Shown here piece by piece: positions 8,520 through 64,000 of a DNA stretch of 64,000 bases; position 1 is the first letter of the stretch, and each line of letters opens with the position of its first letter. The translations under genes were made by a program, and so were the position numbers. A model generated the notes under the pieces. The model saw only the letters and a list, made by a program, of their open reading frames with translations. It did not search any database and had not been told where the DNA came from. The DNA lies in assembly GCA_010909165.1 (NCBI GenBank), contig MU008172.1, positions 310,001 to 374,000 of the forward strand, in the 5' to 3' direction. Source of the stretch: Anthoceros angustus. Its lineage: Eukaryota; Plantae; Anthocerotophyta.

Positions 8520-9310
8520 TCCTGTAAGTAAAACCACAATACAACTCAAACTATTGTTACAAGACCTTTATATTATAGTATAACCAAAATTTGGTAAGAG
8601 AAGTAAAACAATGACACACCGAGTATTAAATTAAATTATGTACATAATCTCACTCATAGCCAATAATTTATTATAGCATCCATAACATGAAGTACTCCAA
8701 GTAACAATAGACTACAAAAATAAGGCAACTCAATGTACATACTTCAATCCTGGTGTGGGACTTCGATGTATACTTTGATTACATATCTACAAAGTCTTCA
8801 AATTCACTAAAATAAGATGTTATCTAAAACAAATTCATAAATCCTAAAAACCCTAAAATCGAAGAAGTCTCCAAGTTCTCCCAAAACTCTAAGAAGCGAT
8901 TCTCACAGCGCTCCGTAGAAAACGAGTTGCACAACGCCAAGGTTTGGTCCGATTAGACCGAAGGGTTTTTTCATATGTACTTCCACCATCTAGGAGAGGT
9001 ATCCATCAGTACCGTGTGGGTCCTCCTCGCCATTAGGCTTAGGCCAAATGGACACATATTTATAAGAACGCCATGATTAAGCATCCTGAGCTTAGATCGG
9101 TACTTAGATGGGGTATCTAAAGGGAGTGGAGACTTAGATGGGGTGCCTAAAGGGAGTGGATGCCCTTGGTGCAAGTAGCTTAGGCAGACCATGGTAGCAC
9201 CAAGTAGCTTAGGCACACCATGGTACAAGTTGTTAAGTACCAATCCCATGACGGAAATCCGTCCTTAGTGGACTTAAATAAAATTATTCTTCTTCTTCTT
9301 CATTAGAAGG
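8520..9310. mobile_element. AT-rich repeat-like remnant (unassigned TE), with internal 28-30 bp tandem duplications at ~9104-9232
   Basis: No ORF with recognisable homology. Contains tandem subrepeats (acttagatggggt...aaagggagtgga x2; caagtagcttaggca...ccatggta x2) and a terminal hairpin motif shared with 55.4/57.8 kb. Confidence 0.3.
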
Positions 9311-32305: not shown

Positions 32306-34495
32306 AAATGAACCTACTACTTAAGGATGACCTACAACTTGTAGTTTGAGTTATCTTTGCTTTACCGTTATTATCGTACATTACTTTCTACTAGATATGA
32401 TGGAAAGAGCCTACCGAGAAGAAGAAGAAAAGACCTTACAACAATAGCACAATGCATTACCACACAAGGGTACGGATGTTGGGTTGTGGTGAGAAACTTT
32501 ATTCATTGAAATATTCAAAATCTCCACCTCTCCACCTGGCATACTCAAGCAATAAGTACTCATATACGAGCATGTACATTGCATTGTCTTATCTAACTAC
32601 TCAAAAAAAGTAAGTGCCCCTGCCTCCCCACATATTCTCCTACCAGACGTTTCATATTGTTGAGAAGTAGAGTCCGTGTGATATGGAAAGTTGACAAACT
32701 ATGTATTTGGGCTTCCCAGGTGAAGTACGCACATCGCAGCATCGACAATAAATCCTTGTCAACAATAGTCCGAAGCTTCGGGAGCAATGCCGCTATTTTT
32801 GTAGTCTTTTGTAACACCATAAGACAAATTTGAAGTCAAGAGAAAGCGAGATACCACGGTAAAGCCAAGACGTATAATTTGGAACCATACGCACGCAACA
32901 GGTTCCAACGGGGCAGTGCGCGGTGCAGACTGCAGAGCAGCAGCAATGAAGGAGGGCGTGGCCCCGGGCCCGGCCCTGGCGGCCTGGCCCTGGCCGCTGG
33001 CTGCTGGCCGCTGGCCGCTGGCCGCTGGCCCGGCGGTGCGCTGCCAATCGCCAAAGGAGTTGGTCGCCATGCGCGTGGCAACGCCTAAAAGGCTAGCACC
33101 AGACGCAGGTAATCGCAGGAAATCTGGCAGGGACGGGCGGGCACCGCAGTCGAGGAAAGGGCAAGGCGCCAGCCCAGTGGGCCGATCCCTCCTCCTCCTC
33201 CCCCCCATCCCCATCCCCATTCAATGGCCGCGGAATCCACATTTATGACCTGCCGTGTTACCATATGCCAAAAGCCTTATCGTTACTAGATGGGCCTCCT
33301 CTTCGAGCATGCGGGTCGGCTCCCCATGAATGTCGTGCTGCAGTGCCCGGTCTTTGAGAGCAGGGACGCCCATTTTGGGGTTTTGGATCAGTTCAAAATT
33401 CCCCGAATTCAAAACTAGAATTTCCGCCTTCAAACTTCGAATTTGGGCTTGGGCACACTTGAGCGAGCAGCATGGAATCGCGAATCGATTCATCCCGGCG
33501 TCGTGTGAGGGGACGGGGCGGCACGATGAGCCAGGTCCTCCTTTTCCTCCCTTTCAATTTCGAGTGTGCGTTGTGTTTGGGAAGAAGCACCGGGGTCTTA
33601 CGGAGACTGGAGTCCGGGCCCCGCTGTGATTCCGTTTTGCCGCGTACCGCGGAAGGGCCCGCCGCGCGGAACGGAACGGAACGGGGAATGGGGAATGGGG
33701 AACGGGGCCCGGGGCATGCCCGTGCCGTTAGACATACATTAATGGCGGTTGAAGGACGAGGAAAGCCCCGGCCTCGGCCTCGGCCCCGGCCCCGGGACCC
33801 GGGAGTCCGGGACCCGGCCCCGTTCTGGCAGTAGCCCCGGCCCGGCCCGGTCCGGTCCGGCCCGGCCCGGCCCGGGCTTCCTTGCTTTTTGTGCCATCCC
33901 GGCCCACATTGCCCACGTCCGCTTCCCAGGTCCCGACTGCTGCGTGCTCCACGTCCTTCCGGCGGGCCGGCGGGCCTGTTCCTGTTCCTGTTCCTGCTCC
34001 TCTTGTTGTGCAACGCTGGCCTCGCCTGGCTGATGATCACATGAAGCTTCTCGGCTGTCGTCGCCGCAGCCGCTGTTGCCGTTGCAGTTGCCTCTCCCTT
34101 GCCACTTCCACTTGCGCTGCCGGTGCCATTTCCGTTTCCATCTCCATCGCCATCGCCAGGCTGCTCCTGCGGCGAGTTGCATGAGCCTCCGCGTTGCGCG
34201 CCGTGGCCCGAGCTGTGTTTGTGTTGGGGTGCGCAATTCCGGCATGGAAGCTCCCTGGGAGCTGACGTGACCGGGTGACCCGCCAGCTGTGGCAGGCCTG
34301 GGAGGTTGGGAGCAGCAGCACCCACGGCGGGGCTGGGATTCTTCTTGTTCCTCCACCGTCTTGGGCGGAAGGAGAGCACGGAAAGGGAGGGAAAGGAAGC
34401 AAAGGAAGGAGAGAGGAGAGGAGCAGCAAATGTGTGGGACGGGGTGGGCGGGGATCGGAGGTAGCAGGAAGAGGGGTGGTGGGTAGTAGGCGGGG

Positions 34496-36516
34496 ATGGG
34501 GAGGAACAAAATCCGGCCCGCTTGGCTGTCCAAGCTGAAGCAGGTGGGGACGTGCTGAAGGTGCAGAAGGGAAGCGAGTCGCCGCCGTCGCAAATTTCGC
34601 AGGGAGCGGGACGAGTCCCAGGCTCCGCCTTCAGCAGGAAGAGCCAGGACGCGCCGGAGCTGGCGCGCTCGCTCAGCCTGCGGCGAGCCAAGGCGCGGGC
34701 GGAATCCAGCAGATCGGACGGGGACGGGGGGCCGCCCACCAGCGGGCACCAGCTGTCCCGGAGCATCGACGCGCTCTACGCCCTGTCGCAGCGCAAGGGG
34801 GAATCGGAGCAGGAGCTGGAGCAGGAGCAGGAGGAAGAGCCGGAGCCGGAGCCGGAGCAGGAGCAGGAGGAAGAGCTGGAGCAGGAGCAGGAGCAGCGGC
34901 AGAGTGAGATATCGCAGGAGGAGCAAGTTCGGGGGCGGCGGGATCGGGAGAAGGAGAAGGAGAAGGAGAGGGAGCGGGAGGAGGAGCGGGCGCACGTTGT
35001 GCGGGACCTGGACCGGGCCACCATGGCGCTGCTCAAGAGCTCGCTCAAGCGGTCCAAGATCGCCAAGCACAAGGAGCTGGCGGAGAGGGCTTTGCGGGCC
35101 ACCGCGGAGCTCAAAGCCAAGACCAGATCTCTGGCGTCGGATGATTCCGCCTCGGTTGCGTCCGATCAGCAGCAGCAGCTGCACCGGAGGCCTTACGGCC
35201 TGACGGCGGGCGGGAGTGCGGGTGGAGGAAGGGCTGTGTTGAGGAGGAGATCGGCTTCCGACCTGCCTCGACCCAATTGGACGTCCGAGAGGCACTACAA
35301 GCACTCGCAGTCCACGTCTGCGGATTTCGAGTCGGATTCCTTGGATGCGGGACAGCCGGAGGCTTCGGTGGATGGCAGGCCCTCTTTCTGCACCAGCGAG
35401 GATGGTTGGGGGCCGGCGGGGGAGCGGGTGGATGTGCGGAGCAGTGATGACGGCTGGGAGAACGGGAGCAGGGGTAGCAGGGGGAGCAGGCGGAGCAGGG
35501 GGAGCAGGGGGAGCAGGCATTCGCGCTCCGCATTGGCTTCTGTCACCGGGAGCGAAGATGGGTGGGACAATGCCGGCACTAGCGCTGTGGCTGCTGAGGC
35601 TGTCGCTGCTGTCTCCAGATCCAAGTACTCTGCGAGGGAGCGGGAGGAGGTTTGGGATAACAGCAGCAAGGTGTCCGATGGGAGTGAATTGCGGGGCTCG
35701 TGGGGGTCTGATCTGTTTGGGAAGCTCAGGGCTCTAAGCCAATTCCGAGCCCAGGCGGCGCATGCGGATGCCGAGGCGGAGGCGGAGGAGGAGTTGGATG
35801 AAGAGGACTCGTCCTATTTGGAGGATGATGGGTGGGCGACAAGCGGGGAATCTTCCGGGGCGTCGCCGGAGAGGGAGTGGGAGACGCCCGGGAGGAGGGA
35901 GATGGGGACGCCCGGGAGGAGGGAGATGGGGACGCCCGGTAGAGGAACGCCAGGCAGGAAGGAGCTGGGTTTGCCGCCCATTTGGACGCCCGGCAGAATG
36001 GAGATGGAGCCTGTGAAGACCCCCTCCAGAAGGGAGATGGGGAGTCCCAGCAGGAGGGAGCTTGAATCTCCGACTAGACGGGCCGTGGGAAGTCCAGGGA
36101 GGCGAGAGGAGGCGTACCAGTACCAGTATGATGATTACGAGGCTGATCACAAGGTAGGGTGGAGGGAGGACTCTGAATCCGACAGGAAGGCGGCCAGGAG
36201 CCGAGCCTTTGAGGTGAAGCAGAAGCAGGGCAGAGCAAACCTGTCGTGCTTGTTGCCTACTGATATATCCGGGGTCGTGAGGGAGAGCGTGGCTATGGTG
36301 AAGTACTCGCAGGATCCGTATGCGGACTTCCGGCATTCCATGTTGGAGATGATTCTGGAGAAGGATATACATCAGTCTGACGATTTGGAGGAGCTCTTGC
36401 ACTGTTATCTCACGCTCAACTCGCCTCGCCAATATGCCCTCATCAAGAGGGCTTTCTGTGACACTTGGAATGAGCTGCTGGCGAGGAGGTCAAGAACTTT
36501 CTGGGGTGCCGTTTAG
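34496..36516 (+). CDS. OFP: OVATE family protein (OFP), ~670 aa; the N-terminus MGRNKIRPAWLSKLKQ joins the main frame through a 1-nt slip in GGGG (34546-34549) or a 59-nt intron (34544-34602)
   Basis: Canonical C-terminal OVATE domain (AMVKYSQDPYADFRHSMLEMILEKDIHQSDDLEELLHCYLTLNSPRQYALIKRAFCDTW) and the N-terminal AW-x-x-KLK motif seen in OFP1-type proteins. Confidence 0.92.
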
Positions 36517-38416: not shown

Positions 38417-41400
38417 TCATTCTAGAAATACCTGCTCCAGCCTTGCCTGACTCGTAGGATGCTTATCACCCCCAACCAGAAAGCTATGCACCAGCCCGTC
38501 CATGTCTGTCCACCAGCTCTGACCAGGCTGCTTCCATGCCCTCAATCTTATTCTCCTTGCCTGGATAATCCTTGCCTGCTCCCACATTTGGGCGCCGGTG
38601 TATATGTTCAGCATCAAGACATACGCTGCAGCATCTTTCTCGTCTAGCTTCAGTGCCTGTTCGAAAGCATAGCATCCCACCTCCACATTGCTCCACCTTC
38701 GACAGGCACTCAGCAAAGTGTGCCAGATAGCAGCGTTCGGAGATACAAGCATCGCCTTTACCAAGGCCAGTGCCTCATGAAGTCGCCCTGTACGGCCCAA
38801 AAGATCCACCATGCATGTGTAGTGATCCACCATGGGAGTGATGCCGCACTCTCTGCTCATAGCTTCAAAGTAACTTTTCCCTTTGCTCACTAAACCTGCA
38901 TGACTGCAGACTGTTAGTACACTAAGAAATGTGATGCCCACTGGCTTTATGCCATCCTCTATCATTCTGTGGATCAAGTCAAAGACAACTTCACTGTCTC
39001 CTCGACAGGCATAGCCTGCAATCAGAGCACTCCAGGTGACAACATCTCTAGTAGGCAGCGTATCAAAAACCTGCTGTGCATCAGCCATGCTTCCAGACTT
39101 TCCATACATGTCTATCAAACTGCCAGCTACAGACAAATTAGCTTGAAGTCCTTGTTCCTTAACCTGTACATGTAGCTGTCTTCCCAGATGTAAAGCTGAT
39201 ACATTTGCACACGCCTGCAGGAGGCACACAAATGTGGCGGGGTTGGGTACAGCTATGCCTTCTTCTTGCATAGCACTGTACAGGCGAAGGGCTTCTTGGC
39301 TCAAGCCCTGCTTGGAATACCCTGCAATTAAAGCATTCCACGATACCACATCCTTCTGACAAAGGCCGTCAAACTCTCTCTGCGCATCGTCCAAGCTGCC
39401 ACATTTTGCATACATGTTTATCAAACTGTTTGCTACGAACACATCACTTTGGTGTCCTTGTTCTCTAATCTTGGCATGAAGCTGCTTCCCCATTTCAAGA
39501 GCTGGGGTCCCCACTGTTGCACATGCCTGCAGCAGGGACACAAATGTGACAGAACTCGGTACGGCGATGCCTTCTTCTTGCATAGAAGTGTAGAGTCGAA
39601 GGGCTTCCTTTCCCATACCCTGCTGGGAATACCCTGCTATCATGGCATTCCACGTCACAACATGCTTTTGACCAAGTGCGTCAAAGACTCTCTGGGCATC
39701 TTCCAAGCTGCCACACTTTGCATACATGTTCACTAAACAGCTGGCTACAGACACATCATCTTGATGTCCTCGTTCCCTGATTTGAGCATGAAGCTGCTTC
39801 CCCTTCTCCAAGGCTGAGGAACCCAATCTTGCGCAAGACTGCAGGAGGCACACAAATGTCACACAGTCCGGCAAAATAGTGCCTGCTTCTTGCATAGCAC
39901 TGTAGAGACGAAAGGCTTCCTGGCTCAAGCCCTGATGGGAATATCCTGCTATCATGGCATTCCAAGCCACCAGATCTTTGTCATTAAGTCCATCAAATAG
40001 TCGCTGAGCATCTACCAAGCTGCCACACTTTGCATACATGTTCACCAAACTGCTGGCAACAAATGCATCAGCTTCATATCCTTGTTCTCTAATCTGTGCA
40101 TGAAGCTGCTTCCCTACCTCCAAAGAAGAGCTGCCGACACTTGCACATGCCTGCAGGAGGCACACAAATGTCACAGAATTGGGTATAGCAATGCCTTCTT
40201 CTTGCATAGCACGGTAGAGACGAAGGGCTTCCTGGCCCATCCCCTGCTGGGAATACCCTGCAATCATGGCAGTCCATGTCACCACATCCTTTTGACCAAG
40301 TCCATCGAACACACTCTGAGCATTTTCCAGGCTACCACACTTTGCGTACATGTTCACTAAACTGCTGGCTACAAACACGTCCGCCTGATGTCGTCCTTGT
40401 CTGATCTGTGCATGGAGCTGTTTCCCAATATCCAAAGATGGGGTGCCCACACTTGCACATGCCTGCAAGAGGCAAACAAAAGTGACAGAGTTCGGAACAG
40501 CGATTCCTTGGGCTTGCATAGAACTGTACAGATGAAGGGCTTCGTGGCCCATGCCCTTCTGGGAATACCCAGCAATCATGGCAGTCCAAGTCACCACGTC
40601 TTTTTCCTCGAGTCCGTCAAACACAATCTGCGCATCTTCCAAGCTGCCACACTTTGCATACATGTTCACTAAACTGCTGGCTATAAACGGATCAACTTGA
40701 TGTCCTCGTTCTCTAAATTGTGCATGAAGCTGCTTCCCCTTCTCCAAAGCAGGGGTGCCGAGACTTGCACATGCCTGCAGGAGAGACACAAATGTCACAG
40801 AGTTTGGTACAGTCATGCCGTCTTCTTGCATGACTCTGTAGAGACGAAGGGCTTCCTGGGCCATGCCCCGATGGGAATATCCTGCTATCATGGCATTCCA
40901 TGTCACCACATTTTTTTCACGAAGTCCATCAAACACGTCCTGAGCATCTCCCAAGCTGCCACACTTCACGTACATAGTCACCAAGCAATTCCAGACAAAC
41001 AAGTTAGGCTCGATATCACTGGCCAAGACGTCAGCGTGCACCTGCCGTCCAGTTTCCAGGTCTGATCCCCTTGCGCAAGACTGAAGGGCTGCGACGAATA
41101 CAAAGCTATCTGCCTTCACATTTGACCTGCGCATCTGGTGATACAGTTGCAGGGCTTGCTTACCCTGTCCGGTTTTGCCATGCGCAGCAATTATGGCAGC
41201 CCACATGCCGGCATCTGGCTGGGCAACCACACCGAACACATTCATCGCGTCTTGCAACCTGCCATGGGAAGCGTACATCCGCAGGATGTGGTTGCACAGG
41301 AACGTATCCGACTGGTACCCATTCTTCACCATGAGAGCATGGACACGGCGACCCAGAACAAGATCCTTCGCTACCACACATTCCTTCAGGACCGTATAGA

Positions 41401-41833
41401 AAAGAGATTTGGAGCAACAACAGTCCGTCAGCACCAGAATTCCCAAAGCCTCCACAGCCTCAGCGAGAAAGCCCTGATGGCAAAGCTTGCTCACTGTGTC
41501 AGCCGTTAAATCACATTCGTATCCTGCATCCCCACAAGGTTCACTATCACCCATCAAGCTCCATTTGGAGGCTGTGAGGTCCCGAGAAGGCTCGGGCCAC
41601 AAGAGCTCCTCGCCACCAATCTTGCTGGAAAATCCGTTTCCAGCTAGAAATGCTCCTGGTCTGAATGGCTTACTTGCGACCTCGTTGTTTGCCAGTGCCA
41701 GCACTTGATTCCTTGTTAGGCGAGCGGGAGCTCTTCCTCGAATGCCCGTGAACCCACCTTGTTGAGAGCAGGGAAAATGAGTCCACAACGGGTGCCCGTT
41801 GCCCGACTCAATTGCAACGCTCCAAACAGCCAT
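38417..41833 (-). CDS. PLS-class PPR protein, paralog of 22809-26053: L-S-P-L-S-(P-L-S)x6-P2-L2-S2-E1-E2-WW PG-box, no DYW deaminase
   Basis: Uninterrupted frame (open from 42001; likely ATG MAVWSV at 41833) with the same motif set, ending PGQSWWTDMDGLVHSFLVGGDKHPTSQARLEQVFLE*. Confidence 0.95.
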   Translation of the reverse strand: MAVWSVAIESGNGHPLWTHFPCSQQGGFTGIRGRAPARLTRNQVLALANNEVASKPFRPGAFLAGNGFSSKIGGEELLWPEPSRDLTASKWSLMGDSEPCGDAGYECDLTADTVSKLCHQGFLAEAVEALGILVLTDCCCSKSLFYTVLKECVVAKDLVLGRRVHALMVKNGYQSDTFLCNHILRMYASHGRLQDAMNVFGVVAQPDAGMWAAIIAAHGKTGQGKQALQLYHQMRRSNVKADSFVFVAALQSCARGSDLETGRQVHADVLASDIEPNLFVWNCLVTMYVKCGSLGDAQDVFDGLREKNVVTWNAMIAGYSHRGMAQEALRLYRVMQEDGMTVPNSVTFVSLLQACASLGTPALEKGKQLHAQFRERGHQVDPFIASSLVNMYAKCGSLEDAQIVFDGLEEKDVVTWTAMIAGYSQKGMGHEALHLYSSMQAQGIAVPNSVTFVCLLQACASVGTPSLDIGKQLHAQIRQGRHQADVFVASSLVNMYAKCGSLENAQSVFDGLGQKDVVTWTAMIAGYSQQGMGQEALRLYRAMQEEGIAIPNSVTFVCLLQACASVGSSSLEVGKQLHAQIREQGYEADAFVASSLVNMYAKCGSLVDAQRLFDGLNDKDLVAWNAMIAGYSHQGLSQEAFRLYSAMQEAGTILPDCVTFVCLLQSCARLGSSALEKGKQLHAQIRERGHQDDVSVASCLVNMYAKCGSLEDAQRVFDALGQKHVVTWNAMIAGYSQQGMGKEALRLYTSMQEEGIAVPSSVTFVSLLQACATVGTPALEMGKQLHAKIREQGHQSDVFVANSLINMYAKCGSLDDAQREFDGLCQKDVVSWNALIAGYSKQGLSQEALRLYSAMQEEGIAVPNPATFVCLLQACANVSALHLGRQLHVQVKEQGLQANLSVAGSLIDMYGKSGSMADAQQVFDTLPTRDVVTWSALIAGYACRGDSEVVFDLIHRMIEDGIKPVGITFLSVLTVCSHAGLVSKGKSYFEAMSRECGITPMVDHYTCMVDLLGRTGRLHEALALVKAMLVSPNAAIWHTLLSACRRWSNVEVGCYAFEQALKLDEKDAAAYVLMLNIYTGAQMWEQARIIQARRIRLRAWKQPGQSWWTDMDGLVHSFLVGGDKHPTSQARLEQVFLE

Positions 41834-43065
41834 GGCTCGAGCCTCGAGGAGCCTCTGGATCCCCCGCGGACCAACTCCGAGACAGTAAAATGCAAGACAG
41901 GTACTGTGTACACGTGATTGGACACCATTGAAATCGTGCTCTGAAGTTCGTCGATGTTGGACTGCCTCCGCGGTAACAGCTGCTTCATCGGGACGATCCA
42001 CACCTTATTCAGGATCGCCTTGTGACCTCAACAGCTCAATGGCATCAACCGCCATGACTTCCCGAGTTGTGGCAAATTGTCCTGTTCTTCCCTTTCAGTA
42101 TCGTATCGAGTTCGGCAAATCATCTTCTTCTTCCCTTCGTATCTTATCTGTATGTCCCGCTTGTGGTTCATCAGCTGAATCCCATGATTCCGAGTCCTAG
42201 CAAGATCGGCTCCTTCGTCTCGTTCTTATTTGTTGGACCTTGCTGGACTCCAGTCCGGAGTCCCTGGTCGGAACCAATCCAATGTGGCAGACAGTGGGCT
42301 TCCGTCGCAGTTCTTCATGGTGGGAGAGTTCATATTGGACTCTCCTTGTCCGCATCAATAAAGACTGGCATTCCTCCGGCTTTTGCTCATACAGTTTACC
42401 ATAAACAGACAGGGCGTTTCGGGTTAAGTGTTTACAATGATTGGCGGGGGCGAGCGACCATGCTGGCACCGAGACGATCGACCAGCGACACAAAGTTCCC
42501 CCCTCTCTCACAAGCGCGCACTTAGTGCAACGTACAATTAAAACAATAATAATTAAATATAATATTTTTAAAATAGTTAATATTATTAAGTAAAAGCTAT
42601 GTAACCTAATAAGGAAAGGACATGGCAAGTTATGGAGCAATGGTTAAGGCCATATAAGTCAATGTGACAAAGGCCATGCTGGCCAAGAGGTGGCTAAAGG
42701 CATTAAGGACACTGAAAAGTTAATCAACCCAATGTCAACCTATCTAAGGATTATAATGATTCTGTGGCCTGGAAGTCATTGAGAGGCATGTTAGATCTAT
42801 GTAGCTCTAGGGCAAAGTACAGGCAGCCCTTTATAGAGATGCAACCATGGCTTGACAATAGTGTCAAGTTCACTCAAAATCTCCCATAGCCTTGTAAAAT
42901 AGATTTGTTCTACATAACTTTGCAAGCATTGTTGATGATGCAAACATGCTGCTATCAAGAGTTCCTCACTCTTAATCTTCAACCACATGAGCACAAGGAG
43001 GACTGGAGCATGAGAATGCTGCTACATGGCCTGTAACTAATTGTAACGCTAACACAAGTGTCAAT

Positions 43066-44556: not shown

Positions 44557-45577
44557 CTACGAATTACCAGCGGCAGCAGCTTCAGCTCGCTTCCTGACAA
44601 AGAAGGCATCTGTCCGGGCCAATCTCTTGACGGCTGTCGCTGGTAGGAATTTCTTCTTCCCAGGTAGCACTTCCAGGGTGCATCCCAGCGCTTCCAGCTT
44701 CGACTTAGCCGAGTCCGAGAACTTTGCTGCCTTTATGGACAGCTTCACATCCAAATCCCCGTCGCCCAAAACCTAAAACCCAGAGCAACAAGCTGAGTCC
44801 ACGGCAATCTCCTACCACAATTCATTCACACAACACGCGGGATCCAAAGCTCATACCTTCAACGGCAGCTTCCGTTCCCTGCCGCTAGGGTTGATGAGGC
44901 CCTTCTCCTTCAGTATCTCAAGAGACACCTCCTCCCCTTCCTGGAAATCTAGGCTGGCAATGTCAGACAGATTCACCGCCACATACTTCGGTAGCCCAGC
45001 ACCCATGCCTGCAGGCACCACAAGCGTCAAATGTCAGCCCCAGAGGAAGAACCTCACCTCACAACCCATTCCACGAAACCGCAATCACATTGTCAGCACA
45101 ATCCTCACCTCCAGCTATCCCCCTGAGCTTGGGCAGCCTCCGGTAAAGAGGCATCTGCCCTCCTTCAAACCCTGGCCGCACTCCCGACCCCGACCTGGAT
45201 TTCTGCCCCCGCATACCAAACCCGCAACTCGCACCCTGGCCAGCTGCAATACCACGCCCCTTCCTCTTGTTCCTCTTCCGGGACCCCGGCTGCGGAGACA
45301 GGTTGGAGAGGCGGAACCTCTCCACAGTGCCATCCTCCACGGTGGCCTCCGCCGCCGCCCGCACCGCCAGCGGCAAGGCCCCCGCGCCGGCCACTCTCCT
45401 GCAGCTCACGCCCGCGCGGAAGCCCTGGATGCTGGACACCGCCGAGGAGGAGCTTAGAGCAGCCCCATCGGCCTTCACCAGCCCCAGCCGCGGCCTCTGC
45501 AAGGCCGGCGAGGCAGCGCTGCCCGACACCGAGGGCACGCACAGCGCTGCTCTGCTCACCGACGCGAAACACGCCAT
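44557..45577 (-). CDS. RPL15: Plastid 50S ribosomal protein L15 with transit peptide: complement(join(44557..44772,44857..45008,45109..45577))
   Basis: [45 protein letters not shown]...[24 protein letters not shown] and LPLKVLGDGDL are uL15 signatures. Ser/Ala-rich N-terminus. GT-AG introns with consistent phases. Confidence 0.97.
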
Positions 45578-45790
45578 GTCCGCTCCCTGGGATGCATACA
45601 ATCCCCGCCCACGCAGCGCACCATCTTCATCCACTCGCGCGCGCACTCGCACCACATCCTTTTCCCGATTACGATTAGATTAGGCTCCCCATTAGCTGGA
45701 CAAGAAATTTAGTTAAACAATTGAAACAGAAAAAAACGGGCTCGGCTCGGCTCGGAACCCATTCTACATGTGGGTAGGTCCTACATATCT

Positions 45791-48700
45791 TCAATACACG
45801 AGATCGCATTGACAGAGGTCGCCAAAAAACTGCTTCACCACGTCCTGAAAGGGAGGGCGCAAGCACATGTAGCCGTTGAGGAACTCCTCCAAATCCAGCA
45901 GGTCGTTGATGTCGTCCTTCTCCAGGATCATGTCCACCATGGCGCTGTGGAAGTCGGAGTCGCGGCCTGGGGAGTCCGGCACCGCAGCGCACAGCTTCTC
46001 CAGCTCCCCGCGCTTCGCCGTCACCATCTCCTGGAGGTCCTTGGAGATCTCCGAGGCCTCCTCGCCCTTCTCCGACTCCAGCTTCAGAGAGCGCGTCTCG
46101 AACTCCAGGTGCGACAGCAGCTCCTGCTCCTGCTCTGAATCCGTCCTGTACGCTCCCGCCCCGAACATCCTCAGAGCCTCCCGTCTGAACACGCCCACCG
46201 ACAGGGCGCAATCGCTGTCGGATTCCGACCCCGATTCCGACCCGGTTCCCTCTTCCTCCTCGGATTCAGACTCCGCTTCCGCTGCCGCTTCCCCTTCCCC
46301 TTCCGCTTCTGCTGCTGGGTCTGGGTCCCTCGTGTCGCCGACTCCTTGCTTATTGCTGCTTTCCACGAGTCTGTCCGACTCGGGTGCTGGCTGGGCCGGG
46401 ATGGCCGCGGGCTGGTCACCGGCTTGGGAGCTCTGGTCGGGGTTCAACGATTTTGAAAGGCCGCGGCCGAGTCTGTTCTGGGACTCCAGGCCGAGGAGCA
46501 GCGTGGTGGCTTTGCTCCCCGGATCGGACTGGATGGAGGTGTTGAGGAGATCGGGCTTGGGCTGCTGGACGCCTGGCTTGTCCGGACCCGGGCTCGGGGG
46601 CCTCGGAGGGCCGCCGTTCCCCTGAGCCTGAGCTCGGGCATTGGTTTGCTTTAAGGCGGACGCTGATACTGATGCTGGGCGGCTTCCGGATTTCAAGTCA
46701 TCGATGCTGATGGTGGCGATGTTCTGGGTGAGGAGGTTTCTGCTGGGAGGCCGCAGCCGCCGATTAGCACTGGCAGGTGCAGGTGCCGGTGCTGTAGCTG
46801 TAGCTGTACCCGTGGGCGTCAGAGGAGGAGCAGGCTGGGATACCTGCATTAGGTACAGAGATGGGAAGGAAGTTCGGCTAATGCTGCTGGGAACTGGGCT
46901 GTTCTCGGCAGGGGTTGCAGATGGGGGAGGGCTTGCAGGGACTGGGACTGAGACTGAGACTGGGACTGGGACTGGGGCTGGGACTGGGACTGGGGCTGGG
47001 GATGGGCTGGATGAACGCTTGGATCGGGGAGCCGAGCGACTGGGGGTGGAGGTTTCCCCACCCGTGCCAGCCTCACTCCGAGCTGCCCGCCTACGGGAGG
47101 GCATCCCGGCGGGTGCTGGACTGGAGTTGGCGGAGATCATTCCCCTGCTCTTGGCTAACAAGGCTCTCATGCCACCTGGTTCAGATTGGACGGAGGAGTT
47201 CATGAAGTCTCGGGTTGATCTGAACCGGGATCTGATGCCAGACGGCTCGGCTCCATTACGGTCGCTGTCATACCCGCCTCCTGGAGAGTCCGAGCTGCTG
47301 TAGAGCTTGGACTTCGCCCTGGAGCTGACGGTGGATCTTTGCGAGCTCCCGACTCTCATGTCCAGGTCCTGATGCGTGTCCGGCAGGGAGGAGGCTCCTA
47401 TGGATTTGGAGCTAGGCGACCGCAGCTTGTACCAAAAGCTCGAGGCTGCTCCCCCTCGGCCAGGCGAGCCGTTCAGGTCATTCTCGACAGCTTCAAGCAG
47501 ACTTGCTCTGCTCAATGGCACACGACTTGGGCTCCTCTGCTTGTCTTCAGAAACCTGCTGGGCTGCAGCTGGCAAAGGCTCGTATTTCTGCTCCATATGC
47601 TTGAAATCATCTGGGAAGTTCCCCTGGTCATCCTCCTCCGGTTCCTGGATGATCGTTCCGGGCGAAGCAGAAATCGGTTTCTGGTTTGGGGACCGCAATA
47701 TCTGATCCGGAGATGCATCTCTTGAGTACTCCAATATTGGACTTTCATCTCCACCATCTGAGTCGAATGTCCGCGGCCTCTCATCACCGTCATCCACCTC
47801 CAATTCCCGCTCTGGCTCCCTGGCTGCCTCTCCCTCTTGGGAATCCATGTCCAATTCACGACCACTCTTGGAATCAAGAGACATGTCACTTGGACCGGAT
47901 GCAGAAGCAGCAGCACGAGCTGCTGCTGCCGCCTGGGCCTTCTCCAGCTGATCACTGAGAATGTCATGAAGGTCCTGCTGCAGAGCCAGCTCCTGCAGCT
48001 GATCAGCAATGTACTGGTCCAAGAACGTGTTCTGGTCGGAGTACTGATCCAGGTACTCATACAACTGCTCATGGTCTTGGATCAAGTACTCATGCTCGTG
48101 CATCACCTCGTCCGGGATATCACCGCTGTCGGGGTTCTCTGTTTCCCTCATCCTGATGGATGTCGATCGACTCATCTTCCCCTTGGACAGCCTGTCGAAA
48201 AACTGCTCAGAACCAGTGCTGGGCGGTCCTGAGTGCACAATCTTGCTCTTCCTTATGGTTTCCGCGATGAGAGGTCCTGAGAAGTACAACCCGCCCACCC
48301 CATTCGGACTGTCCCGGGGACCACGATCCCGAAGCATCCCTGAGAAACTAGACCGATCAACCACCAGCTCTTGATCCTCCGATATCTCCCTGTCATCGTA
48401 AATCTGCCTCAGCACGGATGCCGGAATGACGGGCCCAGATCGCGGCCACTGCTGCTCCCCCTCACTCTCCTGCAGCCCTTCATCCGACATCCCTAGCCCG
48501 CTCTCTATCCTACCGGCAACCAGAGGCCCTGAGAAATTTCTTCGATCCTTCGTCCTCGCCGCAGCCCTTAGTGCTTCCCCGTTGTAGCTGAGATTCTCCC
48601 GTGGCCGGAGGCCCGAATTCCTCAACCGAGTGGCAGCACTGGAAGTGGCTGCCGCTCTGGGAGTTGCTGCTTCCGGCTTGTGCTGTACGCTTCCCCCGTC

Positions 48701-51700
48701 CACCCATACCGGAATTATGTCGTTGCACTCATCGATGTACTCAGGTCGAGAGAGTCGATGCTTCTCTTGAAACCTGTCCTTCTGGATCTTGACATCCTCA
48801 TGCATCAACCTCTCCTCCGTGGCAGCAGCCACCATCCTCGATTTGTGCTTCCCGTTTGCCCCAGCAGCCTCAGACTGTACACGTGCCTGCAAGGCCATCA
48901 GGTTAGAATCCTCCCGAACAGGGCCTGCCTTCCTACCACCTTGACCAGCGTCCCTGGAGAGGGAATTGGCACCCGGTGACCTAGCTCTTCCCCTTTTAGG
49001 TTGCCCCCGATCCGCCCGTGAAGAAGACCAGCTACCATTCCCGTTGGAGTTGGAGTGGTGAGCCGCCCCTGATCTGCTGGTCCTCGGCTTGCTGTAGTAA
49101 GGATCCGACATCTGAGCCTTGAACTGCAAATCAAGCGATCTCCGAGCAGTCTGCGAGCCCGATCCTCTGTTCCACGGCCCTCTCATGTCCGCCGCATCAA
49201 CAGACTGTCCCAGCTTGCTCACCTTGGGCGAGTAGTCCACATTCCTGTACCTGCTCGCAACAGCTCTTGGTCCGTTCCGACGGGCAGCGCTCCCTCCAGA
49301 GGCCGCGGTACCATTGGACTTGGCGCTGGGAGGCGTGCTGGTCTGGTAGGTATCGGAGGCCACCCGAGCGGGAGAGCTCTTGCTGGATCTGCCTTCAACC
49401 AGGTACGGCTTCACAACCTTCTTGGTCACGGTGCGGTCGGCCTCCGACTCGAATTCATCCAGATGCAGCATGAGGTCCAGCCGGCTGAAGCTGCTGGAGC
49501 TGGAGTCCAGACCACCAGCCGTGCGGGGCTGGACCACCAGGCCAGCCTTGAGCTCTGCGTTGTAGTCGTTGAGGAGAGCAGCCACCCTCTGGAAATTCTT
49601 GGCCGTCAGCATCTTGTTGGACGACGTGCTGCTCAGCGCCTTCACTTCAGACTCGATGCTGGACCGGGGCAGGTCCTGGAATCTGGCCGAGTCCGCTTCC
49701 GAGGACGCTTCATCAGCCGGATCCGGCCGGGGAGCTGATCTGCGGTCACTCCGCTCCTTCAGCAGCGCTGCCACTTTGTCCATATTCCGGCTCGTCAGCA
49801 TCTTGGTGGAAGCTGTGCTGCTCAGCACCCTCACGTCCATGGTGGATTCGACGCTAGACCTCGGCTGCTCCGGAGGCTGCACTGGGAGTACTGGATCAAT
49901 TGCCGGATGCCGGAGTTCCGCCTCCTCCGATTCGGAATCCTCAACAGCAGGCAGAGTCTCCCGAAATTTGGGATTTGCGGATCCGGAGCTGCTGCTCTTG
50001 TCCACGGCAGAGGAAGCCACCTCTCCAATGGCCAGCTCCTGCACCTGCGCTGCTCCCGCCGGCTTTGCGATGGAGACAGAGAGACCCGCTATTCCCTCTA
50101 TCATTTTGTTGCCGTACGCTGCTGCTCCCAGAGCCTTGGGTGGTGCAACCAGCTTCTTTCTCCTGTTCCCATCCGCGGTAATCCCTTGTGCCGGCTTGCT
50201 CCAGCTGGTACCAGACTCGCCTACGCTTGCCGCAGCCGCGGCTTGCACCAATCCAAAGTTGAAAGTCCGGTGGATGTCTTGCACAACCTTGGGATCAAGA
50301 TCGATTTTGAGCTTGTGATGGAGCTCCGCAAATCGGTCCGTCAGCTCTGCCTTCAGCGCGGCATCCTTGGGAGTCTCCGCGGTCACGGAAGCGGATTCAA
50401 ACCTCGCCACGGACACGCCATTCAGATCTCCTCCCGAATCTCCAGCCAAAGCGGGCGATACTGAAGGCCCTTGCTCGCTGTCGGACACAGCCCGCTTCTC
50501 TTCCACCTCTAAGCTGCTGCTGCCAGCTTCACCATTCTGACCAGACCCAGCACCATCCTCAACACCGCGTGCTGGGGAAATTACGGGCCCGGCTCTCTCC
50601 TTGATCGGAATTGTTACACCTTTCTGCGCCCTCGCAGGCCCTACTCGCGCTGCCTGCGCAGCATTCCGTTCCAGCTCTCGAATGAGATCCTGGACGGATT
50701 TCTTGGGAGATTGTGGTGTAAACGCTGCCGGCTCCAAGCTTCCTCCTCCTTTGCCATCGAATTCTCTCAAGATCCCCACAATTTTGATTTCCGAAGCGGA
50801 GGGAGGGGACCGCCCACTTCCAACGTCCTCATCTCCACCAACTCCGGATCCCTCCTCCTGCTCCACACTTTCACCATAAGCTGCAATCAAAGATTCGCCG
50901 GCCCCAGATCCTGCCAAAATAGAGGTGGGAGAGCCAGACGAATCAAACAAGGAATCCGGATGCAGCAGACCAGCCGAGCTATCAACCTTTTCACGTTCCG
51001 ACACGACCGCACCTTGAACATACGGAGCTGAGAAATCTACACTTGCTTTCAGAAATTCCAGCATGCTTCCAGGATCTTCATTACTTCCCACAATCTTCTC
51101 CTTGTCAGCCTGTCCCGACACCGAGTCGCCCGCCGGTCGGATTACCTCGCCCTGGCCGTTCAACGCTGAGCTCCCCAGCTTGTTACTCACCGATTTCCTC
51201 CCGGGCCCCGCATTCCTTAACCCCAAGTCGGCCGACTTCCTGCCCGGGCCCGGGGAATCACTCACAGGTCCAGCCTTCTTTGTGACGGTTGCAACGGGCT
51301 GCTTCCTCGCAGCGTCAGGCAATATCCCGGATCCTGTTCGCTTGCCGGCCGAGGCATCCGGCTGCGGTTTCTTATTGGAGGGATTCTGCCCGTCCTTGGA
51401 CGCGGATTTGCGAGCCGGGATGTCGCTCACAGACTTCCTAGCTGGCACTACGGGATCCGCAGAGGCTTTCTTCGCCGCTTTCAGAGTGAAGAGCTCTCCA
51501 GACATGCTCTTCCCCGGACCTCCTTTGCCCTTGATCCCTGTATTTGCAATCTCTGTCGCCTTCTTCTCACTGCCTGCAGCCTTCTTCCGGCTGTTAGAGA
51601 GCAGCGGGCCGGAACCGGTGAGCCTTCTCAGCGGCCACCCGCTTCCTCCAGATTTGTCTTCCTTTGCCGGCTTCTGTGCGGAACCGGCCACTGCCTCCTT

Positions 51701-52573
51701 CTTTGCCCCGGGGCCCGCTGCCGGGATTTCCTTCGCGGGTCCGGAGACGATGACATCAAGCCTCTTAGCGCCTGCTGGTTTCGTGGATTTGGCGTTTTGC
51801 TCGTCCTTCTGCGGGGAAAAATCGGCTGAAAGCGGTGGATCGCACCCCAGCTGTTCCATGAGCATCAGATTTGCAAGGGATGATTCGTACTCCACGGTCG
51901 TGCTCGCTGGACGCAGAGTTCCAGCAGCGTCGTCCCCATCGGAGTCAGAAGCGGTAGCCAGCCTCTGGTACATGTGGATCCCGAAAGTGGGATCATCGGA
52001 ATCCTCCTTTTTCTCCTTGCTCTCCTTCACAAAATTGGACTTCACGATTGGAATCTTGGATTTGGAGAAGGCGGGAGTTGCTTCTTCGGCTCTTGCGACG
52101 TGTTCCCGGGGAAGCTCTAACGATCTGTTCCTCCTCTTTGGCAACGGAACAACGCCGCCAGAGGGGACGCGTGCTATGCCGCAGCTGAGATCAACGGAGT
52201 TGGAGCCCAGGCCCTTGAGGTTGGTAGCGGCCAGCTCCTTCTTGCTGCTCGAACTAGGTCTTCCGTGATCCACACTCTTGGACGTGTTGTTGAAGCTGAT
52301 TGCCCGCGCCAGACTTTGGCTACCCTGCGTGCCGGATGGCTGCTTCTTCTTGGACAAAGTAAGCTTCTTCAACGAGCTGCTCATGCCCTTGAGCTTGCCA
52401 TACCAGTTGCTTGAACCACTGCTGACATAGCCGAGCTCCCTGCCGTCCTCATCACCGCTAGCATAATTTGATGGACTTAACGCTGCCTTGGGCATGGCAC
52501 TTCCCCGCTGACCAGCCCCGGTCCCTTTGCTACCAGCGTCTTCCATGTCTTGTGTTTTCGACAACGCCGTCAT
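45791..52573 (-). CDS. Giant (2260 aa) single-exon OVATE-family-like protein with a degenerate C-terminal OVATE domain
   Basis: 6783-nt uninterrupted ATG ORF. C-terminus DSDFHSAMVDMILEKDDINDLLDLEEFLNGYMCL...VVKQFFGDL aligns by eye with the OVATE consensus. N-terminal SNWYGKLKGM resembles the OFP NAWFYKLKDM motif. Confidence 0.85.
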   Translation of the reverse strand: MTALSKTQDMEDAGSKGTGAGQRGSAMPKAALSPSNYASGDEDGRELGYVSSGSSNWYGKLKGMSSSLKKLTLSKKKQPSGTQGSQSLARAISFNNTSKSVDHGRPSSSSKKELAATNLKGLGSNSVDLSCGIARVPSGGVVPLPKRRNRSLELPREHVARAEEATPAFSKSKIPIVKSNFVKESKEKKEDSDDPTFGIHMYQRLATASDSDGDDAAGTLRPASTTVEYESSLANLMLMEQLGCDPPLSADFSPQKDEQNAKSTKPAGAKRLDVIVSGPAKEIPAAGPGAKKEAVAGSAQKPAKEDKSGGSGWPLRRLTGSGPLLSNSRKKAAGSEKKATEIANTGIKGKGGPGKSMSGELFTLKAAKKASADPVVPARKSVSDIPARKSASKDGQNPSNKKPQPDASAGKRTGSGILPDAARKQPVATVTKKAGPVSDSPGPGRKSADLGLRNAGPGRKSVSNKLGSSALNGQGEVIRPAGDSVSGQADKEKIVGSNEDPGSMLEFLKASVDFSAPYVQGAVVSEREKVDSSAGLLHPDSLFDSSGSPTSILAGSGAGESLIAAYGESVEQEEGSGVGGDEDVGSGRSPPSASEIKIVGILREFDGKGGGSLEPAAFTPQSPKKSVQDLIRELERNAAQAARVGPARAQKGVTIPIKERAGPVISPARGVEDGAGSGQNGEAGSSSLEVEEKRAVSDSEQGPSVSPALAGDSGGDLNGVSVARFESASVTAETPKDAALKAELTDRFAELHHKLKIDLDPKVVQDIHRTFNFGLVQAAAAASVGESGTSWSKPAQGITADGNRRKKLVAPPKALGAAAYGNKMIEGIAGLSVSIAKPAGAAQVQELAIGEVASSAVDKSSSSGSANPKFRETLPAVEDSESEEAELRHPAIDPVLPVQPPEQPRSSVESTMDVRVLSSTASTKMLTSRNMDKVAALLKERSDRRSAPRPDPADEASSEADSARFQDLPRSSIESEVKALSSTSSNKMLTAKNFQRVAALLNDYNAELKAGLVVQPRTAGGLDSSSSSFSRLDLMLHLDEFESEADRTVTKKVVKPYLVEGRSSKSSPARVASDTYQTSTPPSAKSNGTAASGGSAARRNGPRAVASRYRNVDYSPKVSKLGQSVDAADMRGPWNRGSGSQTARRSLDLQFKAQMSDPYYSKPRTSRSGAAHHSNSNGNGSWSSSRADRGQPKRGRARSPGANSLSRDAGQGGRKAGPVREDSNLMALQARVQSEAAGANGKHKSRMVAAATEERLMHEDVKIQKDRFQEKHRLSRPEYIDECNDIIPVWVDGGSVQHKPEAATPRAAATSSAATRLRNSGLRPRENLSYNGEALRAAARTKDRRNFSGPLVAGRIESGLGMSDEGLQESEGEQQWPRSGPVIPASVLRQIYDDREISEDQELVVDRSSFSGMLRDRGPRDSPNGVGGLYFSGPLIAETIRKSKIVHSGPPSTGSEQFFDRLSKGKMSRSTSIRMRETENPDSGDIPDEVMHEHEYLIQDHEQLYEYLDQYSDQNTFLDQYIADQLQELALQQDLHDILSDQLEKAQAAAAARAAASASGPSDMSLDSKSGRELDMDSQEGEAAREPERELEVDDGDERPRTFDSDGGDESPILEYSRDASPDQILRSPNQKPISASPGTIIQEPEEDDQGNFPDDFKHMEQKYEPLPAAAQQVSEDKQRSPSRVPLSRASLLEAVENDLNGSPGRGGAASSFWYKLRSPSSKSIGASSLPDTHQDLDMRVGSSQRSTVSSRAKSKLYSSSDSPGGGYDSDRNGAEPSGIRSRFRSTRDFMNSSVQSEPGGMRALLAKSRGMISANSSPAPAGMPSRRRAARSEAGTGGETSTPSRSAPRSKRSSSPSPAPVPVPAPVPVPVSVSVPVPASPPPSATPAENSPVPSSISRTSFPSLYLMQVSQPAPPLTPTGTATATAPAPAPASANRRLRPPSRNLLTQNIATISIDDLKSGSRPASVSASALKQTNARAQAQGNGGPPRPPSPGPDKPGVQQPKPDLLNTSIQSDPGSKATTLLLGLESQNRLGRGLSKSLNPDQSSQAGDQPAAIPAQPAPESDRLVESSNKQGVGDTRDPDPAAEAEGEGEAAAEAESESEEEEGTGSESGSESDSDCALSVGVFRREALRMFGAGAYRTDSEQEQELLSHLEFETRSLKLESEKGEEASEISKDLQEMVTAKRGELEKLCAAVPDSPGRDSDFHSAMVDMILEKDDINDLLDLEEFLNGYMCLRPPFQDVVKQFFGDLCQCDLVY

Positions 52574-59524: not shown

Positions 59525-62500
59525 ATGACGGTAAAGGACGTTGAGAGAGGGATTGACGCTCAGCGCCGGCCTCTTCTCAGCGGCGGGAGTGGGAGTGGCC
59601 GTGCCTTGGGTGGGAAGAAGTCTAAGAAGACTGCCGAATCCGGTTCGGTTTTTTTCGCGATCGTCTGCACGCTTGTCGTGGCTCTTGGACCCATCTCGTT
59701 CGGATTTTCGGTGAGCGTTGGTTTGGTGCAAGCCGGGTTTGTCATTTCGTCCTGTCAGTGGGCGGAACTGATGGTTTGATGTATGCTTCAGCTTGGCTAC
59801 TCGTCCCCCACCCAAGCATCAATCACCAGCGATCTGCGCCTCACTGTCTCCCAGGTGCTGTTCACCTCACCTCTCCGCGGTTTGCGTTGGCGATGAAGTG
59901 TGCTTGTTTAGTACGTCTTTTCTGACTTCTGGGTTACTCTTTGCAGTTCTCCTTGTATGGCTCTCTTGTCAACGTCGGCGCCATGTTGGGGGCCATCACC
60001 AGTGGCAAGATTGCTGACCGACTGGGGAGGAAAGGGGTAACATGTCGTTCCTGCTCTTCATAGAACGTTACTTTCCTTGTCATCAATCACGGTCTAGAGG
60101 CTTTGTCCAAGTGGATTATCCATCAATTGCATTGCGCCCTATTGATGTTGGATTTTGCTCCTTCTAATATGCAGGCCCTAGTCGTTGCATCTTTGCCACA
60201 TCTGTTGGGCTGGGTGGCAACAGTATTCTCCTCGGTACGCTTTCGTGCTCGTTGTTCACACCCTATGGTCTATGCTTACAACATACAAGGCTGAGTTGAG
60301 AGTCTCAATTCAGCTTGCGGATCTACTTCGAGGCCGCAAGCCCTTTTGATCACGTGCTGTCTGTTATTTGCACCTGGTGCAGAATGCCGTTACTCTTGAC
60401 ATCGGAAGGCTTCTGATTGGTTACGGTGTGGGAGTTATTTCTTTCACTGTAAGTGTCTCCGTCATAGCCCTGGGGTAGTATTCAACTCAATTGTTGCTTC
60501 TGAATCAATCCATGGGCTGGTGCAGGTGCCCATATACATAGCTGAGATTGCTCCCATCCACCTGCGTGGCAGTCTTGGGGCAACCAATCAGGTACTTTTC
60601 CACAACATTTTGTTGAACTTGAAATGGTTTCCCAGCTCTTCCACAGCAGTGTTATTTCACTCTGATACATTTGCTTTCTGGTGCCGCAGCTTGCAGTCAC
60701 CGTGGGCATACTTTTGGCCTATTTGGGTGGCCTCCTTTTGGGATGGCGACAGCTTGCTGCTGCTGGTGTGTACTGTGCACTCGATTTATAGATGTTTGCT
60801 GCATAGCCTGGGAGGTGCAAACGTTTTACACAAGGTTAGGCAAGGGCCTATGCACTTTGGTTAACGTTTTTACTTATAGGATGTCTCGGTTTGCTGATGA
60901 CCTCCAGGACTCATTCCTTGCACACTCCTTCTCATTGGCCTTTTCTTCATTCCAGAGTCTCCTCGCTGGCTGGTGAGTTGATTTCAGTCCTGTCGTGAAA
61001 ATATATGCCCTCGAGGGGATGTTGTGGTTTGCAGCTAACTGGGCTGCATAAACAGATTAAATCAGGTTCTGAGGATGGTGATGTGGCGTCTGCACTGCAA
61101 GTGCTTCGAGGCGCTAGCTGCGATGTCTCGTCTGAGTTGAGAGAAATGAAAGTGAGTTGCAGGTCATCTCCCTCTAAGTAGGTAGCTAAAACTGTTGTAG
61201 TAGAATTGCCAATCACCCACGGCCACAACGCTGATGGCAACTTGGTATCCCAATCGTGAGCATAGTTCACCGTTAGCTTTACCTCAGGATCATTCTGTGT
61301 TATTACCTAGCACATGTCTATATGCTCATCGATGACCCTTGCTTTTGCAGGAAGGTATGGAGGAGGCAAAGTCTCAACCTCCAGCCCAGTTTTCTGATCT
61401 TTTTAGCCGGCGTCTCTTTCGCCCGCTTCTTGTAAGCTTATCACTCCAACCTAAACATACACCACCAGAGAGGTTGCTGCATGAAGGCCAGAAGTGAGCA
61501 AACTATGATAATAACGGTCATGTTTGGATCCCGTGTGTGTCAGGCTGGAGTTGGTTTACAACTTCTCCAGCAATTTGGAGGAATCAATGCCATCATGTTC
61601 TACGCCAGTGAAATCTTCCGTTCAGTTGGTAAGAAGAACTCTGGTGCTGTAATAATGTGAAAGTCACTTCAGCTGTAATAGCAGAGCACAAAAAGTGTTT
61701 AGACTTCGTTACAGCTTATATTCAGGATGCCTGCAAAGATTGCAACCTGAATATAGCGCTGTTACGTGACAGCTTTGTTATCAAAACCTGCGGATGAAGA
61801 CACATGAGTCGACTGATGTAAGATACATTTGGTTGCAGGGTTCACATCCCCAAATACTGCTTCACTCGGGATAGGGGTTCTCCAGGTATTGATGACAGGC
61901 GTAGCGGCAGGAATTATGGACAAAGCGGGCAGGCGGCTTTTGCTCATGGTGAGGAAGGAAGTCATTGTCCCGTATTGCTTTCAATTTGACATCTTGACGG
62001 TATTGTTTCTTTGCTATTCTAGCCAACTTTGGTTGAAGTTGCTGGCATTTGTCTTGGCCAGGTCTCTGCTGGTGGGATGGCTGTGAGCTGCTTCCTTGTG
62101 GGTTTTTCATTCTACCTGAAGGTCAGAACTCACCTTTAATCGCATGCTTATTCCGCTGTCGCTAACTTGTTTTTCTTTCCTAACGGAATGCATTGGCTCT
62201 GATTCTTGTTCCAGGGGCAGATGGCCATGATGTCAAGCCCGAACATGGATATCTATGTGAATGTTTTAGCATTGACCAGCTTACTGGTGTACATCATCGC
62301 GTTCTCGATGGGCATGGGTGCCATACCGTGGATAGTTATGTCTGAAATCTTTCCAGCAAATGTTAAGGGTATGGCAGGGAGCTTGGCGACTCTAGCGAAT
62401 TGGTTTGCAGCTTGGACAGTGACTATGGTGTTCAACTTCATGTTGCAGTGGAGCTCTGCGGGCTCCTTCTGGATATTTGCAGGGGAGTGTGCTTTAACTG

Positions 62501-62574
62501 TGGTGTTCGTGGCACTGTTTGTGCCTGAGACAAGGGGCCGTACTTTAGAGGAGATAGAGGCTTCCTTCGAATGA
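59525..62574 (+). CDS. ERDL6: ERD6-like (ERDL6/AT1G19450 clade) MFS sugar transporter, 14 exons: 59525-59710, 59792-59854, 59947-60036, 60175-60234, 60383-60448, 60526-60591, 60690-60765, 60908-60972, 61056-61151, 61351-61431, 61544-61628, 61839-61948, 62062-62121, 62215-62574
   Basis: Spliced product has [70 protein letters not shown] and [13 protein letters not shown]. It also has an N-terminal di-leucine (RRPLL). All 13 introns are GT-AG and phase-consistent. Confidence 0.95.
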
Positions 62575-63284: not shown

Positions 63285-64000
63285 CTATGGTAGGCTATCA
63301 TCATCATCTTCCCATAGCTCATCATCAAAGTGGTCGTCATAATATTTGCACCTACATCTTATTCCTCTCCTAAGTTTAAGTTCTGGCTTTTCGTCACATG
63401 TTGTTGTGGGAATGAGCTCGTGCTCACGCCCTATTGATGCCAATGGCATATCTTGCCAAAGTATCTCCTCTACTTCCTTTGCCTGCAAAAATATTGCCAT
63501 TTCAAAGGTAGGGTCCAAACCCTTCTCTCTCACGACACAAGCTTTGAACAAGTCCAATAAGATGGCGGTGTCGTTTGCCGCGTATTCTTGTTGCTTGTAA
63601 GATAAGTTCATGCCTCTCTTGAAGGTCATTTGCATGGCCTTTGTCAGTCCCTTCCCCAAGAAGTCCGCCGCGCATCTATGAAGTGAAGGCATGTCTTCCA
63701 ATCCCATCAATTTCTTTGCCCATACCTGTAAGTCCACGACAGAGCGATGTAGGAGCTCCCTTTGTTGGCTGCAAGCCACTTCAGATCTGGGCGTCTAGCA
63801 AATCCAAATTTCACCACCTTTTCATTGGCCATCAATGAATGGAAGTCCTCCGCCCAATCGTTTGCTACTTCCATTGCAAGATCACTTGAAGGCGGAGCCC
63901 TTATCGCAGTTCCAATATCCATGATGGGGTCCATGATCTTATTCACAGAAATATCTATCAGGAATGTCATGTTGGCGTTGTTTGCCATATTGCCCCTTAA
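63285..64000 (-). CDS. 3' part of a DEDDy 3'-5' exonuclease (WRN-exo/RNase D/Mut-7-like), with an apparent 1-nt frameshift at 63758-63760; 5' part lies outside the window
   Basis: TFLIDI...HSLMANEKVVKFGF...DLKWL in one frame and VVDLQ...SL...FLGKGLTKAMQ...LSYKQQEYAANDTAILLDLF (ExoIII YAAxD) in the next. Adding one C to the CCC run fuses them. Confidence 0.75.

Follow-up and report, generated by a model that had tools for sequence, protein, structure and literature searches.

OVATE family proteins (OFPs) are known as small regulators of organ shape whose action involves both TRM/microtubule complexes and TALE homeodomain proteins; to our knowledge, nearly all work on them has been done in seed plants. 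Here, we describe a gene for an OVATE-domain protein of 2260 amino acids (aa) in the hornwort Anthoceros angustus, identified in a 64,000-nt stretch of contig MU008172.1 (positions 310,001 to 374,000 of the forward strand, assembly GCA_010909165.1), hereafter called the window. The open reading frames (ORFs) of OFP genes surveyed in Betula measure 321–1269 bp, corresponding to 107–423 aa (PMC9613114). The protein from the window, referred to as the giant OFP, is about five times longer than the longest of these, and 3.4 times the length of a neighbouring 664-codon ORF with a canonical OVATE domain. Based on the analyses below, we consider it likely that the giant is a real gene with no intron in its coding sequence, encoding an enlarged OFP with conserved islands in a disordered body and probably serving as an adaptor or scaffold.

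The giant reading frame and its orthologue

45791..52573 (minus strand): complete coding sequence of the giant OVATE-domain protein, ATG to TGA, 2260 aa plus stop, with an end-to-end orthologue

The 2260 codons of the giant ORF contain no in-frame stop, whereas the other two frames contain 0–11 stops each per 100 codons, and in every 100-codon interval at least one of these two frames is interrupted. An in-frame stop is located 13 codons 5' of the ATG. The base composition varies by codon position in most intervals of the ORF, and the GC content of the locus is 57–61%. No stretch resembling a retained intron was observed in the giant ORF, that is, no segment that lacked coding periodicity or displayed off-frame ORF behaviour.

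An orthologue (P0001) of 2380 aa is encoded by a single ORF at positions 1990–9132 of a 9373-nt contig (L001) in Logan run SRR33208241, a public sequencing run unrelated to the window genome. The two proteins align from an N-terminal motif to the last residues (LVY in the giant and FVY in the orthologue, in the order as aligned), with an identity of 44% by BLASTP and 48–51% by MAFFT, and all insertions and deletions are in frame. Met10 of the giant is aligned with Met1 of the orthologue, and judging from the alignment the true start could be either Met1 or Met10. In the gene for the orthologue, too, an in-frame stop is located shortly 5' of the aligned start codon. The ratio of nonsynonymous to synonymous substitution (dN/dS, NG86) is 0.23 overall and 0.13–0.51 in each computable 150-codon interval, which are only rough values since dS is saturated (>1.5). 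Thus, based on the end-to-end 2380-aa relative and a dN/dS of about 0.23, we conclude that the giant is a conserved coding gene and not a chance ORF. The giant architecture goes back to a common ancestor of at least two divergent lineages.

Since no intron-like stretch was observed and the alignment with the orthologue is in frame, the coding sequence is best read as uninterrupted. The intronless ORF of 2260 aa in the first-pass annotation, which was made from the letters of the window and a list of its ORFs, is thereby upheld. Intron-free coding sequences are also the rule among OFP genes, being found in 18 of the 20 in Betula (PMC9613114). The 2 kb located 5' of the ATG of the orthologue (positions 1–1989 of its contig) contain no ORF longer than 104 aa, and the GC content falls to 38% directly before the start. 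In its sequence, this region looks more like a genomic promoter or a 5' untranslated region (UTR) than like cDNA; if the contig is genomic, the coding sequence of the orthologue is likewise intron-free. Searches by tblastx and blastn for synteny between the flanks of this ORF and the window gave no match.

The C-terminal OVATE domain and the N-terminal motif

45812..45958 (minus strand): diverged OVATE domain, aa 2206–2254 of 2260, matching PF04844 model positions 6–54 of 58
34522..36516 (plus strand): neighbouring ORF of 664 codons with a canonical OVATE domain at aa 596–652 (36307–36477), PF04844 score 82 bits
52382..52408 (minus strand): motif NWYGKLKGM, aa 56–64, invariant in the orthologue

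The OVATE domain is located at the extreme C-terminus in both the giant and its orthologue. In the giant, the Pfam model PF04844 scored 26.2 bits (E 8e-6) for the last 140 aa and 24.6 bits for the last 200 aa, a marginal match given that the gathering cut-off is 25 bits and that the score drops with longer queries. For the C-terminus of the orthologue, the score was 28.9 bits (aa 2323–2375 of 2380, model positions 3–55). Comparison by BLASTP of the giant's domain with the canonical domain of the neighbouring ORF showed 46% identity over 48 aa (E 4e-8). An ESM Atlas search with the last 140 aa gave a top score of 0.90 (193/256 shared features), and the family-bearing entries among the ten best were all PF04844 clusters from Streptophyta. 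Judged from these three lines of comparison, which agree, the C-terminus forms a genuine, though diverged, OVATE domain.

The divergence concerns the signatures of the family. The aligned segments read GRDSDF and CLRP in the giant, DPCLDF and CLRE in the orthologue, and DPYADF and TLNS in the neighbouring ORF, which retains QDPYADF and LTLNSP. Hence GRD replaces DPY and LRP replaces LNS in the giant, in agreement with the loss of both hallmarks noted in the first-pass annotation, and the complete D-P-Y...D-F and L-N patterns are not found; DPY and LNS are signatures and not the definition of the family. As read from the alignment, the loss of DPY is specific to the lineage of the window, with D-P retained in the orthologue, and the change from LN to LR is common to both.

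The acidic residues of the domain core are retained (D2207, D2214, E2218, D2220, D2221, D2224, D2227, E2229 and E2230), and the OVATE stretch, with 70% identity to the orthologue in its intervals of the alignment, is among the best-conserved islands of the protein. The region was modelled as three helices by AlphaFold2 at a predicted local distance difference test score (pLDDT) of 41–66, with an alignment of two sequences as input. In tomato, the basic M8 motif of TRM proteins is bound by conserved acidic residues of the OFP domain (PMC6226536). The acidic core retained in the giant would be compatible with binding of the TRM M8 motif and/or of TALE homeodomains; in tomato, D280 is the most critical residue for binding TRM proteins.

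At the other end of the protein, the string SNWYGKLKGM (aa 55–64) contains a motif, NWYGKLKGM, that resembles the W[FY]xKL motif in the N-termini of OFPs. The string is present, as proposed earlier, and NWYGKLKGM is invariant between the two proteins, but its designation as OFP-type finds no counterpart in Pfam: no match to PF13724 (DNA_binding_2) was obtained with the first 100 aa at E≤10 or with the first 460 aa at E≤1. PF13724 is found in many, but not all, OFPs. A second string of this kind, FWYKLRSPS (aa 1711–1719), was considered as a sign of a gene fusion and rejected, since the orthologue lacks a conserved counterpart; its presence is probably due to chance.

The long middle region and its relatives

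52022..52063 (minus strand): conserved island KSKIPIVKSNFVKE, aa 171–184, from the alignment with the orthologue
50225..50371 (minus strand): conserved helical island, aa 735–783, with the core LHHKLKIDLDPKVVQDIHRTFN, from the alignment with the orthologue and AlphaFold
49478..49861 (minus strand): twice-present motif SST(A/S)S(T/N)KMLT..N...VAALL, aa 918–938 and 982–1002, from the alignment and AlphaFold
48218..48544 (minus strand): four conserved SGP[LIVP] motifs (NFSGPLV, SGPVIPASVLR, YFSGPL and VHSGPPS), aa 1344–1452, from the alignment
47894..48103 (minus strand): acidic helical patch, aa 1491–1560, pLDDT up to 90, 75–82% identical to the orthologue
46938..47010 (minus strand): hexanucleotide tandem repeat coding for a run of PV/PA dipeptides, aa ~1856–1880, absent in the orthologue
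46218..46313 (minus strand): imperfect short tandem repeats, from a repeat scan, coding for an acidic E/S/G run directly before the C-terminal module

The giant protein is rich in serine (13.9%), alanine (10.9%), glycine (8.8%), proline (7.6%) and arginine (6.8%), and disorder-promoting residues make up 65% of its sequence. The mean pLDDT in AlphaFold2 was 34.8 and 34.9 for the two halves of the protein, each run with a two-sequence alignment, and these low values are partly due to the shallow input. About 2100 aa of the giant are thus predicted to be mostly intrinsically disordered. Composition and pLDDT both agree with the disordered body rich in S, G, A, P and R that had been proposed from the sequence, but the body is not featureless, as it contains about 20 islands that are 70–88% identical to the orthologue.

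The best-conserved stretch (88% identity) consists of the twice-present motif, which can also be written SSTSSNKMLT..NF.RVAALL, followed by YNAELKAGLV.QPR..GG.LDSSSSSF. The only confident element in the AlphaFold2 models is a pair of helices at aa 1491–1560. The acidic helical patch of the first-pass annotation was recovered within this pair, as HEQLYEYLDQYS...LQQDL at approximately aa 1494–1535. Short predicted helices coincide with the conserved islands at aa 627–643, 735–783, 928–946 and 991–1009. Further conserved islands are ASRYRNVDYSPKV, RRSLDLQF, KRGRARSP and LSRPEYIDE, as well as RTSFPSLYLMQVS and LRPPSRNLLTQNIATIS.

Internal repeats in the protein were not detected by self-BLAST at E≤1e-3, and the SSTSSNKMLT motif, although present twice, is too short to score. 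Eight separate segments of the giant were searched against Pfam and matched no family other than Ovate; weak matches to Band_7 and Dict-STAT-coil (E 0.05–0.26) were dismissed as coiled-coil noise.

Relatives of the giant were searched for in several collections. A HMMER profile of the core (aa 700–1560), run against 1.84 billion representative proteins, identified the orthologue only. The same single relative was obtained among proteins of 1243–3955 aa in word-index searches with the full-length sequence, the two-sequence alignment and aa 2120–2260, which have limited sensitivity and in which the full-length and alignment queries scored the best 8000 candidates. ESM Atlas gave nothing useful with the core (best score 0.75), and a metagenome scan with the core alignment gave no confirmed locus.

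Since the protein of the window is itself absent from the collections, hornwort proteomes seem to be poorly represented in them. Other plants are sampled far better, and the absence of core relatives from them carries weight without amounting to proof; on this pattern the giant looks lineage-restricted. The earlier designation as lineage-specific agrees with these searches to the extent that the core has no other relative, but the orthologue shows that the protein is not unique to the window genome. No account of hornwort OFPs, or of OFPs of this size, was found in the literature, and a literature search on FSGPL gave nothing relevant. From the sequence comparisons, the giant looks like a previously undescribed, lineage-restricted giant variant of the OFP family.

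Interpretation and comparison with known systems

If the giant is an enlarged OFP, its acidic three-helix OVATE module would dock on the usual partners of OFPs: TALE homeodomain proteins and/or, within the TON1-TRM-PP2A complex, the basic M8 motif of TRM proteins. Other factors may be recruited by the conserved islands of the tail, which consist of short helices and linear motifs. In that case the giant would serve as a large adaptor or scaffold and not as a small repressor. New partners, a role in cell shape or division, and the formation of condensates, as put forward in the first-pass annotation, are speculative.

Several observations weigh against the giant as a functional enlarged OFP. 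The PF04844 score for the whole protein, 17.8 bits, is below the gathering cut-off, and the window copy leaves positions 1–5 of the Ovate model, among them D-P-Y, unmatched. To these are added the missing PF13724 match, the saturation of dS and the shallow alignments given to AlphaFold2. The exact protein was not on record when protein collections were looked up by exact sequence, and the contig of the orthologue may be genomic.

A more specific proposal is that the hornwort giant OFP carries a disordered arm with its own partner motifs, including the confidently predicted helical acidic module at aa 1491–1560 and the SGP cluster, and bridges the OFP-TRM/TTP microtubule machinery or TALE factors to lineage-specific partners. 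We put this forward tentatively, as a possibility that is rather improbable in this form. If true, the giant would represent a new hub that organises cell division or cell shape in a group of plants whose cell biology is unusual.

It is unlikely that the locus, although coding and conserved, yields mainly shorter isoforms from internal promoters or starts, such as an OFP of ordinary size encoded by the final few hundred codons, with the giant as a minor or conditional product. The W[FY]xKL-like string FWYKLRSPS is located about 490 aa before the OVATE domain, which is an ordinary spacing for OFPs, and the lack of a record for the full protein would also fit such a scenario. However, the string is not conserved between the giant and its orthologue, and in both species purifying selection has kept the whole frame of 2260 codons open, with the N-terminal 1700 aa being no exception. 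The full length must therefore be translated at least sometimes.

The C-terminal module might instead be an OVATE-derived remnant that no longer binds the canonical partners, in which case the giant would function as a new hornwort-specific disordered protein, active through conserved islands such as the aa 1491–1560 helices and the SGP motifs, with 'OFP' as a purely historical label. The altered signatures (DPY to GRD and LNS to LRP in the giant, LN to LR also in the orthologue) and the marginal Pfam score are consistent with this, and both the best-conserved parts and the sole confidently folded ones are located outside the domain. However, the OVATE stretch ranks with the best-conserved islands of the protein, and the acidic core and the C-terminal position are kept, down to the same last residues. 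These features argue for retained function of the module, and we regard a remnant as quite unlikely.

That the ORF is not a gene at all, but a frame left open by chance in GC-rich DNA, or else a pseudogene or a sequence derived from repeats, with a spurious OVATE match, is an explanation that could draw on the GC content, the low-complexity stretches and short tandem repeats, and the lack both of relatives other than the orthologue and of a record for the protein itself, but it is effectively refuted by the off-frame stops in every 100-codon interval as compared to none in frame, the colinear 2380-aa orthologue with in-frame insertions and deletions only, the dN/dS of about 0.23 and the three independent lines for OVATE homology.

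The enlarged OFP thus remains our preferred reading, on the level of annotation from sequence and models, and would surprise specialists on OFPs. A conserved OFP of about five times the usual size would show the OVATE module as the docking end of a large scaffold. The giant gene would also provide hornwort biologists with a concrete, intron-free knock-out target for studies of how OFP-TRM or OFP-KNOX/BELL modules functioned at an early stage of land-plant evolution.

The giant gene and the neighbouring OFP paralogue are convergent (tail-to-tail), with about 9.3 kb between the paralogue and the 3' end of the giant. As listed, the paralogous ORF (34522–36516) begins at TTG, with the first ATG at approximately codon 168; repeated TPGRREMG units are present, and a GKLRAL string precedes the OVATE domain by about 190 aa. 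Its 5' part is overlapped by antisense ORFs of 457 and 593 aa (33400–35500, minus strand) of low complexity, rich in P, R and L, in a stretch of 66% GC. The coding sequence on the opposite strand is GC-rich and resembles a repeat, and in all likelihood the antisense ORFs are artefacts of it. Between the two OFP genes lies a PPR-E gene (38417–42001, minus strand) of 1194 codons, whose product carries numerous PPR repeats together with an E motif (PF20431), with no DYW domain at the end of this ORF.

An ORF at 45059–45655 (minus strand) starts about 135 nt past the stop codon of the giant and has no Pfam match at E≤0.001; its C-terminal part looks similar to the N-terminal region of plastid ribosomal protein uL15, including a transit peptide. 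If this ORF is real, the 3' UTR of the giant and the promoter of that gene share less than 200 nt. Farther away, exon-like ORF pieces at 60520–62574 (plus strand) belong to an MFS sugar transporter (PF00083, 93 bits for 62206–62574), and an exon-like piece at 63285–63779 (minus strand) to a 3'-5' exonuclease domain protein (PF01612, 23.4 bits, slightly under the cut-off).

Compared to described OFPs (PF04844; tomato OVATE/SlOFP20 and AtOFP1–19), the giant shares the OVATE domain at the very C-terminus, the acidic core of this domain, the intron-free coding sequence and a poorly conserved, disorder-rich N-terminal part, and a canonical OFP paralogue is located 9 kb away. Unlike these proteins, it has lost the DPY and LNS signatures, PF13724 is undetected, and its approximately 20 conserved islands have no detectable counterpart beyond one orthologue.

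A diverged or incomplete OVATE domain is also characteristic of the Ovate-like OFPs of the AtOFP17 class, AtOFP17 having a partial ovate domain (2026 preprint, 10.64898/2026.06.30.735610), and an 'OFP17' cluster was among the ESM Atlas neighbours of the giant (score 0.83, representative of 183 aa). The giant differs from this class in being more than ten times longer and in having lost only the first few model positions. On the microtubule side, the known partners of OFPs are the TRM proteins (PMC6226536). The giant shows no sequence relationship to them, with Ovate as its only Pfam family and motifs M1–M8 not searched individually, but it resembles them in design: both are long, largely disordered proteins with short conserved motifs, which in TRM proteins recruit partners.

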